Sequence record: MN496306.1
Reading direction: 5' to 3' (one strand)
DNA: 11,729 bases
Both the position numbers and the translations under genes were made by a program. Below the pieces are notes generated by a model, which made no database searches, had not been told where the DNA came from, and saw nothing but the letters and a program-made list of their open reading frames with translations. Numbering within the stretch: position 1 is the stretch's first letter; each line of letters opens with the position of its first letter. Shown here one piece after another: positions 4,650 to 9,989 of the stretch.

Positions 4650-5105
4650 TCAATTCACCAGTTCTTTTAATGCGGTAATTCGAGTTTCAAGGTCCTTCAT
4701 TCTTGCTGGTGGTAATAGATAGCCGTTGAGGTCCTTTCTAAAATTATACTTCTGAATTTGTCCTAACAGCGCTTCAAGTTCATTAATCGTAGTAAGTAGC
4801 TTTGGTACATCAATTTTGACTTCGGCTCTGGATTCACTTTCACTTATATTAATATTGAATGTAACTGTGTTGGTCCCTTCCTCTTTTGCTATCTCTATTC
4901 CTAATTCTCGTGTTATCTTGTTTAGTTCCTCTTTGTTGCCACCAAGAGCATAAATTGTTGCCTCAAGAACTTTCTTCACAATTCTTTTCTTTTCTGGGGT
5001 AAGGCTCTTGTATATTGCTTTTGTCCGTGTGCTAGTCCTGAAGAAAATTTCCGTTGACGTTTTTTCTATATTTTTTTGTATATACGAGTTTGTGTTTTCA
5101 CTCAT
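4650..5105 (-). CDS. Hypothetical early protein (151 aa) with possible N-terminal DNA-binding region and C-terminal coiled coil
   Basis: Coupled to neighbours by overlaps; SD GGTGG; no confident family assignment. Confidence 0.8.
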   Translation of the reverse strand: MSENTNSYIQKNIEKTSTEIFFRTSTRTKAIYKSLTPEKKRIVKKVLEATIYALGGNKEELNKITRELGIEIAKEEGTNTVTFNINISESESRAEVKIDVPKLLTTINELEALLGQIQKYNFRKDLNGYLLPPARMKDLETRITALKELVN

Positions 5106-5340
5106 TTTTTACCACCATCTGGTCGTTTGACTTCCAAACAATCCTTCTTGGGAAGTCTAATACCTCACAATAACCTTCTTCGTCTCTTTCGCACAAGATT
5201 TCCACCATCTTCAATATGTTGTATGCAGTAGATGGTGCTATTTCGAATTGTATTATCAAGTCTTCTACGGACAATTCCCCCTTCTTTTTGAGAATTTGAA
5301 GCGCGGACTTAGCTTTTTGGAACGAGTTTTGTCTGGGCAT
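5098..5340 (-). CDS. f112: Winged-helix transcription regulator, SSV1 F112 homologue (80 aa, lacks the long C-terminal tail)
   Basis: ILKKKGELSVEDLIIQFEIAPSTAYNI...ICER matches the F112 pattern; first gene after the T5-like promoter; SD GAGGGTGA. Confidence 0.85.
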   Translation of the reverse strand: MPRQNSFQKAKSALQILKKKGELSVEDLIIQFEIAPSTAYNILKMVEILCERDEEGYCEVLDFPRRIVWKSNDQMVVKNE

Positions 5341-5346
5341 ATCTTT

Positions 5347-5411
5347 TCACCCTCTATTCTTCTTCTATTCATTCTGAGTTTAAAAGTTTTACTCTTCTAT
5401 TCTTCTTCTTT
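5347..5411 (-). promoter_or_regulatory. T5-like early promoter (TATA 5379-5385) flanked by two tandem 11-bp operator pairs
   Basis: On the - strand: AAAGAAGAAGA ATAGAAGAGTA aaac TTTTAAA ctcagaatga ATAGAAGAAGA ATAGAGGGTGA; mirrors 6129-6193. Confidence 0.8.
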
Positions 5412-5440
5412 TCATTTTAGTTTCAACCAAGTGAGTATTC

Positions 5441-5473
5441 CTTATAATATAATTTGTATAATAGGGGCCAAAG
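5441..5473 (+). promoter_or_regulatory. Tind-like promoter for b49
   Basis: TTATAATA at 5442-5449, 32 nt before ATG 5474, similar to the spacing at the other leaderless promoters. Confidence 0.55.
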
Positions 5474-5620
5474 ATGGGGTGTCAGAGAGCAGAACTACTG
5501 GCCCTTCTTGAGTATATTGAAGAAGAATGCACGAAGAAAGACTGCATAAGCGTAGTGAGAGAGATAAAAGAGCGCGTAAAGAAGAACGCAATGCTAGAGG
5601 CAATCAACAGCCTGTACTAA
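5474..5620 (+). CDS. b49: SSV1 B49 homologue (48 aa, MGCQRAELLALLEYIEEECTKKDCISVVREIKERVKKNAMLEAINSLY); not in the ORF track
   Basis: Hand translation; MGC..ELL.LLEYI..EC...C....E..ERVKK.A..EAIN.L pattern as in B49; same position as the SSV1 Tind gene. Confidence 0.85.
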   Translation: MGCQRAELLALLEYIEEECTKKDCISVVREIKERVKKNAMLEAINSLY

Positions 5621-5632
5621 GCCCAACTCTTC

Positions 5633-5886
5633 TTTATTCTTTTTCTACACACATACACACAAATAGGGGACTCCATCCCCGGGGTCCAGTTTTTGCGGAG
5701 TCTGACAGACGTCTGACAGATTTTTTTATTCTTTTTCTACACACATACACACATATACACACAGAGTACAAAAGATTGTTTTATAGTGTTTTTGTCTGTC
5801 AGACATCTGACAGACGGTTTTTTCTAAACCCACTTTTTTCTTAGTGTTTGTTAATGTGTGTATATGTGTGTATGTGTGTAGAAAAA
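5633..5886. repeat. Repeat-rich non-coding region, putative replication origin
   Basis: 29-bp exact direct repeat (5633-5661, 5725-5753); 32-bp perfect inverted repeat (5732-5763, 5855-5886); four TCTG-W-CAGA units (5701, 5712, 5795, 5806). The origin role is inferred from position. Confidence 0.75.
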
Positions 5887-5908
5887 ATGAATAGACAGAA
5901 AAAAAAGG

Positions 5909-6073
5909 CTACGACTTCATGAGCTCTTCTATCCTACGTCTTACTGCATCTATCACAAACTCTTGTCTGCTAGTGTACCCAGCTTTCCCCATCTTCAAAA
6001 TTTCATCTATTTGGTCTGCCAATGATTTTGAAATTTTCACCCCTACCCATTCGATTTTATCTTTTTTAGGCAT
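5909..6073 (-). CDS. Ribbon-helix-helix repressor at the SSV1 F55 position (54 aa, MPKKDKIEWVGVKISKSLADQIDEILKMGKAGYTSRQEFVIDAVRRRIEELMKS); not in the ORF track
   Basis: Hand translation; RHH pattern (beta strand WVGVKIS, helix, GY.SR.EFV..AVR); SD GAGGT; divergent from the T6-like promoter. Confidence 0.85.
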   Translation of the reverse strand: MPKKDKIEWVGVKISKSLADQIDEILKMGKAGYTSRQEFVIDAVRRRIEELMKS

Positions 6074-6128
6074 CTTCGCTACCTCTATTATTCTTATAGT
6101 ATGTTTATTATTAAAAAGAAGATGGTGG

Positions 6129-6193
6129 ATAGAAGTAGAATAGAAGAGTAAAGTTTAAATATGAGAGTAGAATAGAAGTAGAATAGAGGTGGC
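6129..6193 (+). promoter_or_regulatory. T6-like early promoter (TATA TTTAAATA 6154-6161) flanked by two tandem 11-bp operator pairs
   Basis: ATAGAAGTAGA ATAGAAGAGTA (6129-6150) and ATAGAAGTAGA ATAGAGGTGGC (6172-6193). Confidence 0.8.
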
Positions 6194-6196
6194 AAA

Positions 6197-6499
6197 ATGG
6201 AAACCCCCAAACCCAAATACGAAATTGTTGGGGAAGAAGAAATACATTTTTTTACAAGAATATTTGAAGAAGAAGCGTCCTATAATAATGACAAATTCAT
6301 CGAGATAGAATTTGTCAAGCCTTTTGCTGATACTGGCAGATTTTATGCTGGTGACGCAAGAATCGAATATGTTGAAAGAGAGCTAAAATACATATTACAA
6401 TTATATAAAATATATAACAAAACAGCTAATGGCGAATTACAGTCCCAAATCAAGAAAGAGATACTAATAACTTTAGCGAAAATTGCCGGCATGTTGTGA
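6197..6499 (+). CDS. a100: SSV1 A100-like protein (100 aa)
   Basis: C-terminal ELKYILQLYKIY...IKKEILITLAKI resembles A100; first T6 gene; SD GAGGTGG. Confidence 0.75.
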   Translation: METPKPKYEIVGEEEIHFFTRIFEEEASYNNDKFIEIEFVKPFADTGRFYAGDARIEYVERELKYILQLYKIYNKTANGELQSQIKKEILITLAKIAGML

Positions 6500-6505
6500 T
6501 GCAAG

Positions 6506-6676
6506 ATGAAAGTAGTGACGTTTAAGCTAGAAGATGACTTGTTAAGGATTTTAGACTTATACGCTATCAAGACGAAAACGACAAGAAGCGACGTAATTCG
6601 CCAAGCATTGATGTTGTTATTGAAGGATGAAATAAACAAAGCGAGAGCAAAAGTTGAAACAATCCCGCTGAGGTGA
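6506..6676 (+). CDS. aCcr1: RHH regulator of the aCcr1 clade (56 aa, MKVVTFKLEDDLLRILDLYAIKTKTTRSDVIRQALMLLLKDEINKARAKVETIPLR); not in the ORF track
   Basis: Hand translation; shares VVTFK, DLL..LD.YAIK, RS..IR.A and terminal AKVE.I.L with Sulfolobales aCcr1 as I recall it. Confidence 0.82.
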   Translation: MKVVTFKLEDDLLRILDLYAIKTKTTRSDVIRQALMLLLKDEINKARAKVETIPLR

Positions 6677-7595: not shown

Positions 7596-9989
7596 ATGAA
7601 GTGGCTACTATTTTTACTGCTATTACTAGGAGTTATAACAATAGTAGGACCAACTGTTAATGCTATAGTGGCCCCACCCCCCGGCAGTGGCGGGGCTTAT
7701 GCTACAACATGCAACTTCACATTACCAGTTACCACATATACAAAAACATGTCAAGTAGTGCAGAATGGTTCTACTTTCGCTTCAGCTTCATGGCGTAACC
7801 CATCGTATGTTAGTGTGTATAATACATACTATCTGCAAATATTGCCGAATCAAGAATACATAAACAATAACGTACCACTAGCTCTTTCGGCATCAGTAAT
7901 CGCATTAAATGCTACTTTTCAATTAGCTAGCAGTAGTAACAGCGGAAGTTATGGTGGTGTGGCAATAGGATACGGAACGCTTATAAACCCCAACATGGGT
8001 AACTATGGGCCTCAACCCCCATATTATGCTACTGGAATTGTTGTGTGGTTAGAACACGGTGCAATGAGTACATATCATCTATTTGTATTTTACAATGGGC
8101 AGATGGTGCTGAATGCCAGTGTTGGGAGTGTTGCTATTGGTCAGAAATTAGGAATAGGTTTTTGGTACACGTTTGGTCAACCAATAAAGATATACTACTA
8201 TAATGGTTCTGTGTACACGTATAGCTTATCTATATATAATTCTATGGCGACAATAAACAGCTATTATATCATATCAGCTTCTAACGCTGGCCCGGGTTAT
8301 GGTTATGGGCAATGGGTCCTTTTAAACATACAGTATTTCCAGACGCAAACGATTACTTACACAGCTACATTTTCTTATTACGCAGTTCAGTTGTCCAATG
8401 GCGTTAATGCATTAGTAGCATACACTGACGCTTACAACCCAGTAAACATAACTTCTAATGCGTCATATGGTGTTATCGCAATAGTGAAAGAAGTAAACTA
8501 TAGTGTCAGTAATGCACAATACCCCGTTTCTTCACCATTCTCATTTCTTCCTAGCTCTAACGGCATATATATCATAGCTTATTCTTATCCCTTCCCCTCA
8601 ATAAACTCATACTATATCAACATCACATTTAACTTCCAATTCGTGACACCGCAACAAACAGTTTTCAAGAACGTCACAATTCCAGTGATTGTCTTTGCAT
8701 TTGCATTCGCATTTTCCTATGTTAAGTTGCCAAACTCTACCTATCTTCCCGGCCAAACTGTGACTTTGACATATTCTGCTAGTCCAAATTATCCGCCAAA
8801 CATGGGGTACATACCGATTTCACCGCCAACAGTCTCAATTAATGCACCCGGTGTTGTACAAGCAAATTACCCTGTTACATTCAAAATACCTAATGTAACA
8901 ACACCACAAGCATTTAGTTACACAATAACGGTGAGTGAAGGTTCTTTCGTTATAGCTACATATAATGGTATGCTGTATGTTATAGTGCCTAACAAACTTC
9001 CCGTTATTTTCGTTCAACCTTATCCCACTACAGTGACCCAAGGACAAACTCTCAAACTAACATTCCAATTTAGTTATGCCACACCTCTAGAGAACATAAG
9101 TACAAGTGTATTTCAAAAAGGGGCAAATTACTTGTATTTGCCCGCACAAATAGTATCTGCAAATGCGGTCATACAGTTCTACGCATCTTGGAGCAGTTCC
9201 AATGATGGCCTAATCATATTCACAAATACTGTGAATTACATTATCCCCTTCAATGGCACAAACGCACTCACTTTCACAAATAACAGTATAAACACGCTAA
9301 CAATTTCTGTGTCCAATGGGACAATCCTTATTTCAAATGGAGTCAACAAACTGCTACTACAGAACACCTCACCAATTATCGGAATAGGCTTTTACAACCC
9401 ATACCCAATTAACATTAAATGGGTATATTTGTTTGGGATTGTCACCCCTACTGCGACTGCGGGTCAATCATATGTGATTCTCATAGGGCAAAACCCATCA
9501 ACATTGCAACAATACACAACTGGTTACGTTAATCAGTCAGGGTGGGCTACCGTAAGCATACCGATTACACAGACACCATATGAGCTGATTGATATTGATT
9601 GGTATGGCGTGAAATACATCATATTGAATATATCAGTAACTCAACCTACAACTACAACAACACCTACTGTGAATACTTCAACTCTCACTTACAACTACAC
9701 CCAACCATTCAGCAATAGCATCCAACCAAATAGCACATTGTATAATTTTGCAAATGCCCAGCCATGGGCGACTGTGATTGGGATAATAGTGGTTGTTGTC
9801 ATAGCATTATTGGGATGGAAATTTGGAAGTCTAAGCGGTGCAATAGGCGGTGCGACAGCGGGCCTAATAATGACAGCTTATCTTGGTCTACTGCCATGGT
9901 ATCTATTCTACATCTTTGTTCTCGGAATTGCAATGCTTCTCGCAAAATTGATAGCAGATAAATTCATGAGTGGTGATTCAGATGACTGA
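7596..9989 (+). CDS. vp4: VP4 tail / receptor-binding glycoprotein, SSV1 C792 homologue (797 aa)
   Basis: Signal peptide; Asn/Thr/Ser/Tyr-rich beta-type body with many N-x-S/T sequons; Thr linker; C-terminal TM helices. Confidence 0.92.
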   Translation: MKWLLFLLLLLGVITIVGPTVNAIVAPPPGSGGAYATTCNFTLPVTTYTKTCQVVQNGSTFASASWRNPSYVSVYNTYYLQILPNQEYINNNVPLALSASVIALNATFQLASSSNSGSYGGVAIGYGTLINPNMGNYGPQPPYYATGIVVWLEHGAMSTYHLFVFYNGQMVLNASVGSVAIGQKLGIGFWYTFGQPIKIYYYNGSVYTYSLSIYNSMATINSYYIISASNAGPGYGYGQWVLLNIQYFQTQTITYTATFSYYAVQLSNGVNALVAYTDAYNPVNITSNASYGVIAIVKEVNYSVSNAQYPVSSPFSFLPSSNGIYIIAYSYPFPSINSYYINITFNFQFVTPQQTVFKNVTIPVIVFAFAFAFSYVKLPNSTYLPGQTVTLTYSASPNYPPNMGYIPISPPTVSINAPGVVQANYPVTFKIPNVTTPQAFSYTITVSEGSFVIATYNGMLYVIVPNKLPVIFVQPYPTTVTQGQTLKLTFQFSYATPLENISTSVFQKGANYLYLPAQIVSANAVIQFYASWSSSNDGLIIFTNTVNYIIPFNGTNALTFTNNSINTLTISVSNGTILISNGVNKLLLQNTSPIIGIGFYNPYPINIKWVYLFGIVTPTATAGQSYVILIGQNPSTLQQYTTGYVNQSGWATVSIPITQTPYELIDIDWYGVKYIILNISVTQPTTTTTPTVNTSTLTYNYTQPFSNSIQPNSTLYNFANAQPWATVIGIIVVVVIALLGWKFGSLSGAIGGATAGLIMTAYLGLLPWYLFYIFVLGIAMLLAKLIADKFMSGDSDD

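Follow-up and report, generated by a model that had tools for sequence, protein, structure and literature searches.

To my knowledge, F55 from SSV1 (Sulfolobus spindle-shaped virus 1) is understood better than any other lysogeny/induction regulator of a crenarchaeal virus and is the only worked-out carrier-state repressor of a fusellovirus; B49 is the product of the SSV1 transcript Tind, which is inducible by ultraviolet light (UV). F55 recognises an 11-nucleotide (nt) sequence with the consensus ATAGATAGAGT, and the promoters T5, T6 and Tind each carry two F55 sites of two tandem repeats, overlapping the B recognition element (BRE) and the transcription start site (TSS), while Tlys carries one site (PMC9608457; PMC5569661). 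That F55 binds these units rests on electrophoretic mobility shift assays (EMSA), footprints and in vivo assays (Fusco et al. 2013, 2015, as reviewed in PMC9608457 and in PMC5569661). After UV treatment F55 vacates Tind first and T5 and T6 later, and a RadA-F55-DNA complex is the proposed damage sensor (PMC9608457; PMC5569661). F55, its promoter and B49 have been stated to be unique to SSV1 (Goodman and Stedman 2018, PMC6080066; 2022 minireview, PMC9608457). Here I compare this switch with the region 5347-6193 of SSV20, whose complete circular genome of 11,729 base pairs (bp; MN496306.1) is identical over its full length to the window, that is, to the whole stretch of DNA analysed. Judged by its sequence, this region very probably is the cassette that controls the early genes of SSV20, truly homologous to the F55 switch of SSV1 but with a diverged, second operator specificity.

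SSV20 comes from Sulfolobus sp. E5-1 and from Naghaso hot spring in the Philippines; within the phage collection it is related to SSV19, SSV21 and SSV22, which come from that spring too, and more distantly to SSV1. The order F-112, T5 promoter, b49, repeats, F55-like gene, T6 promoter, A-100-like gene is common to SSV20 and SSV1. In both viruses a ribbon-helix-helix (RHH) protein of similar size, 54 amino acids (aa) in SSV20 and 55 aa in F55, is encoded between Tind and T6 and divergently from T6, and in both a repeat-rich stretch separates the convergent Tind and Tlys genes. The reported uniqueness of F55 is an annotation artefact. The gene has no coding sequence (CDS) annotation in either NC_001338.1 or X07234.1, and I read it from the list of open reading frames (ORFs) at L002:5510-5677 on the minus strand (L002 denotes SSV1, L004 and L005 denote SSV21 and SSV22, and L006, L010, L011 and L015 are the fetched contigs or elements of relatives). 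Pangenome tables treat F55 as absent or unique because it is unannotated in the SSV1 records. In the orthogroup table of the 2022 minireview the SSV19 and SSV20 proteins QGA87221 and QGA87245 thus stand alone in OG0000105, without an SSV1 member (PMC9608457), as the protein set used for SSV1 does not include F55. I found no link between the SSV19/20 proteins and F55 in the literature searched, which did not take in the original description of SSV19-22 (Zhang et al. 2020).

The initial annotation had placed tandem 11-mers on both sides of the TATA box of each outward promoter, at 5347-5368, 5390-5411, 6129-6150 and 6172-6193, and all four pairs are there (Table 1). As a full account of the units this list needs two amendments, as 5401-5411 is degenerate (AAAG...) and an extra degenerate unit, ATGAGAGTAGA at 6161-6171, precedes the T6 proximal pair. 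Similarly, the units behind the proposed consensus ATAGAAG(T/A)AGA are real, but across lineages the 11-bp unit is better described as ATAGA(A/G)GT(A/G)GA. Along the direction of transcription, the T5-like promoter reads AAAGAAGAAGA ATAGAAGAGTA, TATA, 11 nt, ATAGAAGAAGA ATAGAGGGTGA, 6 nt and ATG, and the T6-like promoter reads ATAGAAGTAGA ATAGAAGAGTA, TATA, degenerate unit, ATAGAAGTAGA ATAGAGGTGGC, 3 nt and ATG, so that the two are imperfect inverted copies with 27-nt arms that are 85-89% complementary. The TSSs predicted from the mapped SSV1 T6 TSS and from TATA spacing, at about 5355 for T5 and about 6185 for T6, are both covered by the proximal pairs; the TATA boxes of T5 and b49 enclose the T5 distal pair, which is some 30 bp upstream of the putative b49 box. 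The single unit that had been noticed at the start of the RHH gene (6078-6088, minus strand) is likewise present, 4 nt upstream of the start codon (6073) and over the predicted TSS, in a position homologous to the Tlys site of SSV1.

Chance does not explain these units, as the SSV20 genome holds 32 matches to the consensus with at most two mismatches against 10.4 +/- 3.4 expected, a number reached by no shuffle, and the exact consensus is restricted to these promoters. In addition, I scanned both strands of the whole 11.7-kb genome with a position weight matrix (PWM) for the SSV20-type unit that was built solely from the units of other elements (L006 and L011). Its top eight genome matches are eight of the nine named SSV20 units, all inside 5347-6193, and the remaining unit, 5401-5411, ties for rank 12.

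The layout of the promoters is that of SSV1, with tandem 11-bp direct repeats flanking the T5 and T6 TATA boxes over BRE and TSS, and when the T6 promoters are aligned on their TATA boxes, the box AAAGTTTAAATA and a TSS-proximal ATAGAGG are common to both viruses. The units themselves differ at positions 6-8 and 11 from the SSV1 consensus ATAGATAGAGT, and distal and proximal pairs are spaced 43 bp apart in SSV20 against 39-41 bp in SSV1. The deviation of the SSV20 units from this consensus is what marks the region as a variant of the F55-type switch. The SSV1-type matrix detects none of the SSV20 promoter sites, its best match in the SSV20 genome being 8734-8744, and the SSV20-type matrix finds no site in the SSV1 promoters. 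The proteins have nearly identical helices and differ most in the N-terminal strand, EYVTVSIP in F55 and EWVGVKIS in SSV20. Hydrophobic residues at every other position of an RHH strand (here V, V and I) point into the core, and from this I infer, in line with the range aligned to NikR, that the DNA-facing residues are the intervening ones, Y10/T12/S14 in F55 and W9/G11/K13 in SSV20.

A search of 1.84 billion representatives, exhaustive and profile-free, returned only a handful of close relatives, and the contigs of these were compared. Their alignment falls into two strand classes, class A with Y-(V/I)-T-V-(S/Q) and class B with W-V-G-(V/C)-K. Five lineages belong to class A (SSV1, L015, L010 and the second gene of each of L006 and L011), three to class B (SSV19/20 and the first gene of each of L006 and L011). 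Immediately upstream of its own ATG each gene has a unit that follows the class: it is ATAGATAG/ATAGATAA in class A (ATAGATAGCGT in SSV1, ATAGATAACTC in L015, and ATAGATAGAGT in L010 and before the second genes of L006 and L011) and ATAGA(A/G)G(T/C) in class B (ATAGAGGTAGC in SSV20, AAAGAGGTAGC in SSV19, ATAGAAGCAGA before the first gene of L006 and ATAGAAGTTGA before that of L011). The T5/T6 units are of type A in the elements with class A alone (SSV1, L015), and of type B in those with class B alone (SSV19/20) and in those with both. In the three class B lineages and at both promoters, ATAG starts at about -69, -58, -26 and -15 from the ATG, with pair starts 43 bp apart; class A has a spacing of 39-41 bp.

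The fusellovirus-like elements L006 (2885-3942) and L011 (2486-3460) carry two F55 paralogs on the same strand, class B followed by class A, together with a b49 homolog on the opposite strand that is cut to 29 aa in L011. With at most one mismatch allowed, the class A paralog of these elements has a site at its own promoter only. Two paralogs side by side, each with its own unit type, are the strongest argument that the classes are read differently. It could be held instead that there is no true divergence, F55 and the SSV20 RHH each recognising both unit types through ATAGA...AG in one and the same circuit without heteroimmunity, and this would agree with the seven of 11 unit positions in common (ATAGA, A9 and G10) and with the near identity of the helices. 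However, all three of the residues taken to face the DNA differ, neither matrix detects the promoter sites of the other class, and the retention of both paralogs with separate unit types in two elements argues for non-redundant recognition, so that I regard such cross-recognition as unlikely.

A further promoter was seen in L010, whose RHH is class A-like (Y-T-Q). At 585-674 this F-112-type promoter has three units spaced by 11 bp downstream of the TATA box (ATAGATGAGAG, ATAGAGGTGAG and ATAGGTG...), and unrelated CCTTAG/GACGGTCC repeats upstream of it; judged by their sequence, these promoter repeats may be a third operator variant.

Taken together, the homology of RHH and B49, the gene order, the promoter layout, the class-specific matrices and the covariation with the strand support the initial proposal of the same circuit as that of SSV1 F55 with diverged specificity. 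Several observations weigh against this interpretation. Part of the covariation might stem from linked DNA being inherited together, and the lineages are few (three of class B, five of class A). The assignment of W9/G11/K13 to base contacts depends on strand alternation and on the NikR alignment range. The SSV20 protein scores 13.4 bits with Pfam RHH_1, below the cut-off of 20.5, which SSV1 F55 passes with 21.3. Unlike SSV1 Tind, the b49 promoter of SSV20 has no convincing unit by sequence or matrix scan, as had been stated initially; the T5-Tind interval is shorter in SSV20, and only a weak ATAGGGGCCAA (5461-5471) is present, just ahead of the b49 start codon and below the top 30 PWM matches.

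Two further points of this kind each lead to an alternative. First, the F-112-like gene rides in the same exchangeable cassette as the RHH gene, so that the comparison of SSV20 with SSV21 (see below) would by itself leave F-112 as a possible binder. The units might thus be real and yet be bound by another protein of the cassette or of an early operon, either the F-112-like protein (5098-5340) or the aCcr-like RHH (6506-6676), with the 54-aa RHH controlling its own promoter or something else, and F-112 and F55-like genes do occur together in SSV1, L006, L011, L015 and L010. The equivalent SSV1 units, however, are bound by F55 in EMSA, footprint and in vivo assays (PMC9608457; PMC5569661), the elements with two RHH paralogs have a single F-112 gene but hold two unit types, each beside its own RHH, and SSV21/22 encode the aCcr-like RHH too but are without these units; another binder therefore appears very improbable.

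Second, the TSS-proximal core ATAGAGG is found at T6 of SSV1, SSV19 and SSV21/22 as well as of SSV20, whatever the regulator, and the SSV20 proximal units contain a Shine-Dalgarno-like GAGGTG. As ATAGAGG is shared with SSV21/22, which lack this RHH, part of the unit is core promoter or leader, and the TSS-proximal ATAGAGG is probably also core promoter or 5' leader rather than a class-specific operator. Extended to all units, this would make the repeats mainly core-promoter architecture (BRE, initiator and leader) for the host transcription factor B (TFB) and TATA-binding protein (TBP) or for another host factor, which would also accord with T5 and T6 being near-copies. On promoters that are otherwise similar, however, SSV20, SSV1 and SSV21/22 differ sharply in their distal pairs and in the first proximal unit, in step with the regulator class, and the SSV20 unit recurs at the RHH gene's own, otherwise unrelated promoter. 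Of the alternatives considered here I find this extended form the least credible, and a homolog of the F55 switch with its own operators stays the preferred reading.

On that reading, the 54-aa RHH (5909-6073, minus strand) would most likely dimerise, and its dimers would bind the 11-bp direct repeats in pairs along one face of the helix. At T5 and T6 one pair, which abuts the TATA box on its upstream (BRE) side, would be occupied, and so would a second, starting 43 bp or about four helical turns further on, over the TSS, so that occupied units would exclude TBP/TFB or RNA polymerase. The early operons and the repressor gene would be kept low in the carrier state and be released when occupancy is lost, and the single unit over the RHH TSS is a candidate site for negative autoregulation. 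The b49 homolog would be the counterpart of UV-inducible Tind, release upon damage and the role of b49 being carried over from SSV1 by analogy.

Comparison within the Naghaso viruses indicates that the region is exchangeable. SSV20 and SSV21 are 96-98% identical outside 4993 to about 6182 (blastn), and the cassettes of SSV20 and SSV19 share 84-91% identity, central repeats excepted, although the structural module of SSV19 is different. F55 and B49 homologs were not found in SSV21/22. In the same place between T5-like and T6-like operons, with similar TATA boxes and again with a small RHH-type gene divergent from T6, these two viruses have a regulator of another lineage and other repeats: an RH3-domain RHH in the F55 position (Pfam RH3_dom, E 6.7e-35; L004:5727-5957, minus strand), a second ORF of 76 aa and a 59-aa RHH-like first T5 gene. 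GATTGATAG repeats occupy the same T5/T6 promoter positions as the SSV20 units, and GGATTGATAG repeats flank the T5 TATA box and also occur downstream of the T6 one. By its sequence, the SSV21/22 cassette is likely an independent regulator/operator pair. SSV20 and SSV22 can co-infect and recombine (PMC10970483), which is compatible with cassette-specific control but no proof of it. As to SSV19, a protein identical to its RHH (P0005) is encoded on a 2.55-Mb contig of Sulfolobus sp. E11-6, which suggests that SSV19 is integrated in the host chromosome.

Table 1. Coordinates of the SSV20 control region (window numbering) and of the corresponding region in SSV21/22; scores are from the PWM built on L006 and L011.
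Feature	Position and sequence	Strand	Remarks
T5 proximal pair	5358-5368 ATAGAAGAAGA, 5347-5357 ATAGAGGGTGA	-	14.2, 11.2 bits; between TATA and start codon
T5-like TATA box	5378..5389, AAACTTTTAAAC	-	read from sequence; aligns with annotated SSV1 box A
T5 distal pair	5401-5411 AAAGAAGAAGA, 5390-5400 ATAGAAGAGTA	-	9.0, 11.0 bits; abuts BRE side of TATA
T6 distal pair	6129-6139 ATAGAAGTAGA, 6140-6150 ATAGAAGAGTA	+	17.7, 11.0 bits; between divergent Tlys-like and T6 TATA boxes
T6-like TATA box	6151..6162, AAGTTTAAATAT	+	core identical to SSV1 T6 box A
T6 proximal operators	6161..6193: degenerate ATGAGAGTAGA 6161-6171, ATAGAAGTAGA 6172-6182, ATAGAGGTGGC 6183-6193	+	17.7, 12.9 bits (latter two)
Single unit at RHH promoter	6078..6088, ATAGAGGTAGC	-	13.2 bits, rank 4 genome-wide
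Putative Tlys-like TATA box	6104..6117, TTTTTAATAATAAA	-	predicted, read from sequence
Putative Tind-like promoter (b49)	AT-rich TATA region 5441-5452; weak unit-like ATAGGGGCCAA 5461-5471	+	prediction only
54-aa RHH, F55 homolog, class B (W9, G11, K13)	5909..6073	-	64% identity to F55, E 8e-23
b49 homolog, 48 aa	5474..5620	+	no GenBank annotation; 53% identity to SSV1 B49, E 2e-16
First gene of T5-like operon, 80-aa F-112 homolog (winged-helix)	5098..5340	-	Pfam PF09645 F-112, E 4.7e-15; position of F-112 as in SSV1
First gene of T6-like operon, 100-aa counterpart of SSV1 A-100	6197..6499	+	same position as A-100
aCcr-like RHH	6506-6676		present also in SSV21/22
Repeat region	5628..5898		between convergent b49 and RHH genes
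Exchangeable regulatory cassette	4993..6182		blastn; right edge set by eye at common ATAGAGGTGGC
Alternative cassette, SSV21/SSV22	L004:5416-6077, L005:5330-5989		

The AlphaFold2 model of the 54-aa RHH (predicted local distance difference test, pLDDT, 86) has an extended N-terminus and helices at 16-28 and 36-53, and its best Foldseek matches are the RHH domains of NikR, HicB3 and ParD, with template modelling (TM) scores of 0.60-0.71 and E values of at least 0.07, which are weak, as one would expect of a protein with 54 residues; with phmmer it matches NikR at E 0.04. Between SSV20 and SSV19 its gene has seven synonymous and two non-synonymous changes, which points to purifying selection. 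Homologs of b49 are present in SSV19, L006, L011 and L015, and a Pfam search with B49 gave no match. The GenBank CDS QGA87244.1 (105 aa, 5527-5844, plus strand) runs out of frame with b49 and spans the repeat region. As SSV19 and SSV20 differ by four synonymous and three non-synonymous changes in the b49 frame, but by one and seven in the annotated 105-aa frame, the substitution pattern favours the former and QGA87244.1 is probably spurious. The idea that an operator-like sequence at the YI(D/E)xE codons of b49 covaries with class was rejected, as the class A element L015 breaks the pattern and GAAGAAGAA is unremarkable for coding sequence. The 100-aa product of the first T6 gene matches Pfam DUF5517 weakly (E 4.7e-4, below the cut-off).

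The repeat region contains a perfect 32-nt inverted repeat (5732-5763/5855-5886), present a third time at 5640-5665, as well as GTCTGACAGACGTCTGACAG and its inverted counterpart (5700-5720/5795-5815), repeats of the CACACA type and of GTCTGACAG, and runs of T, and it is flanked by degenerate unit-like GTAGAAAAAGA. The sequence of this central region differs in SSV19. L006 has similar inverted repeats of the CACACA type between its two RHH genes, and SSV1 has TGTCTGAC repeats at L002:5073-5095. The equivalent SSV1 region has been described as repeat-rich and hypothesised to be an origin; from its sequence, the SSV20 region is a candidate origin or bidirectional terminator.

A single-protein search of IMG/VR found no relative, and a search with the alignment returned, besides SSV1, only one new element, L015 of class A. 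Each word-index protein search gave a single cluster: with P0001 this was P0005, the SSV19 homolog, and with P0006 it was P0006. An exact 19-mer of the class B operator had no match in IMG/VR, and six matches to it on metagenome contigs were discarded as single chance matches with neither an RHH gene nor a second pair. The more distant RHH matches P0010 and P0011 were set aside, lying in unrelated contexts without ATAG repeats, and so were further genome matches (L018-L023, Promethearchaeota, DHVE2 and others), which are generic RHH proteins. One fusellovirus-like contig of 13.3 kb (L009/L016/L017; NZ_JBLYQL010000032.1, 13,279 bp) stands within an assembly labelled Brevundimonas sp., a label that probably reflects contamination. 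Its RHH recurs in a metagenome-assembled genome (MAG) named, by label only, as a Thermoplasmatales archaeon (L006, JAVZAS010000002.1), where a 60-kb contig has an archease gene beside the fusellovirus-like element.

It is possible, and I put this forward tentatively, that the F55 family comprises at least two orthogonal classes, Y/T/S reading ATAGATAGAGT and W/G/K reading ATAGAAGTAGA, which act as exchangeable immunity-like cassettes; that some elements stack both as a two-repressor switch; that SSV20 and SSV21/22 are a natural near-isogenic pair; and that the F55/B49 cassette is the determinant of UV inducibility, a property hitherto thought peculiar to SSV1. Heteroimmunity between SSV20 and SSV1, which the initial annotation had suggested, is a reasonable but speculative idea, and in the literature searched I found no demonstration of superinfection immunity through F55. 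A second natural class with its cognate operators would give direct access to the way an archaeal RHH recognises direct repeats, with three strand residues set against four bases. Between SSV20 and SSV21/22 backbone and host are the same and the cassette alone differs. This amounts to a natural swap experiment, in which one could cleanly ask whether UV inducibility and cross-regulation come with the F55/B49 cassette.

By way of analogy only, the arrangement recalls the immunity regions of lambdoid phages (CI/Cro, OL/OR). The folds of the regulators are unrelated, helix-turn-helix there and RHH in SSV20, and the SSV20 promoters are of the archaeal TATA/BRE type with direct repeats as operators. 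However, in both a repressor gene lies between divergent early promoters with repeated operators, the repressor is autoregulated (in SSV20, presumably through the single unit at its own start), and the cassette is exchanged between otherwise similar genomes.

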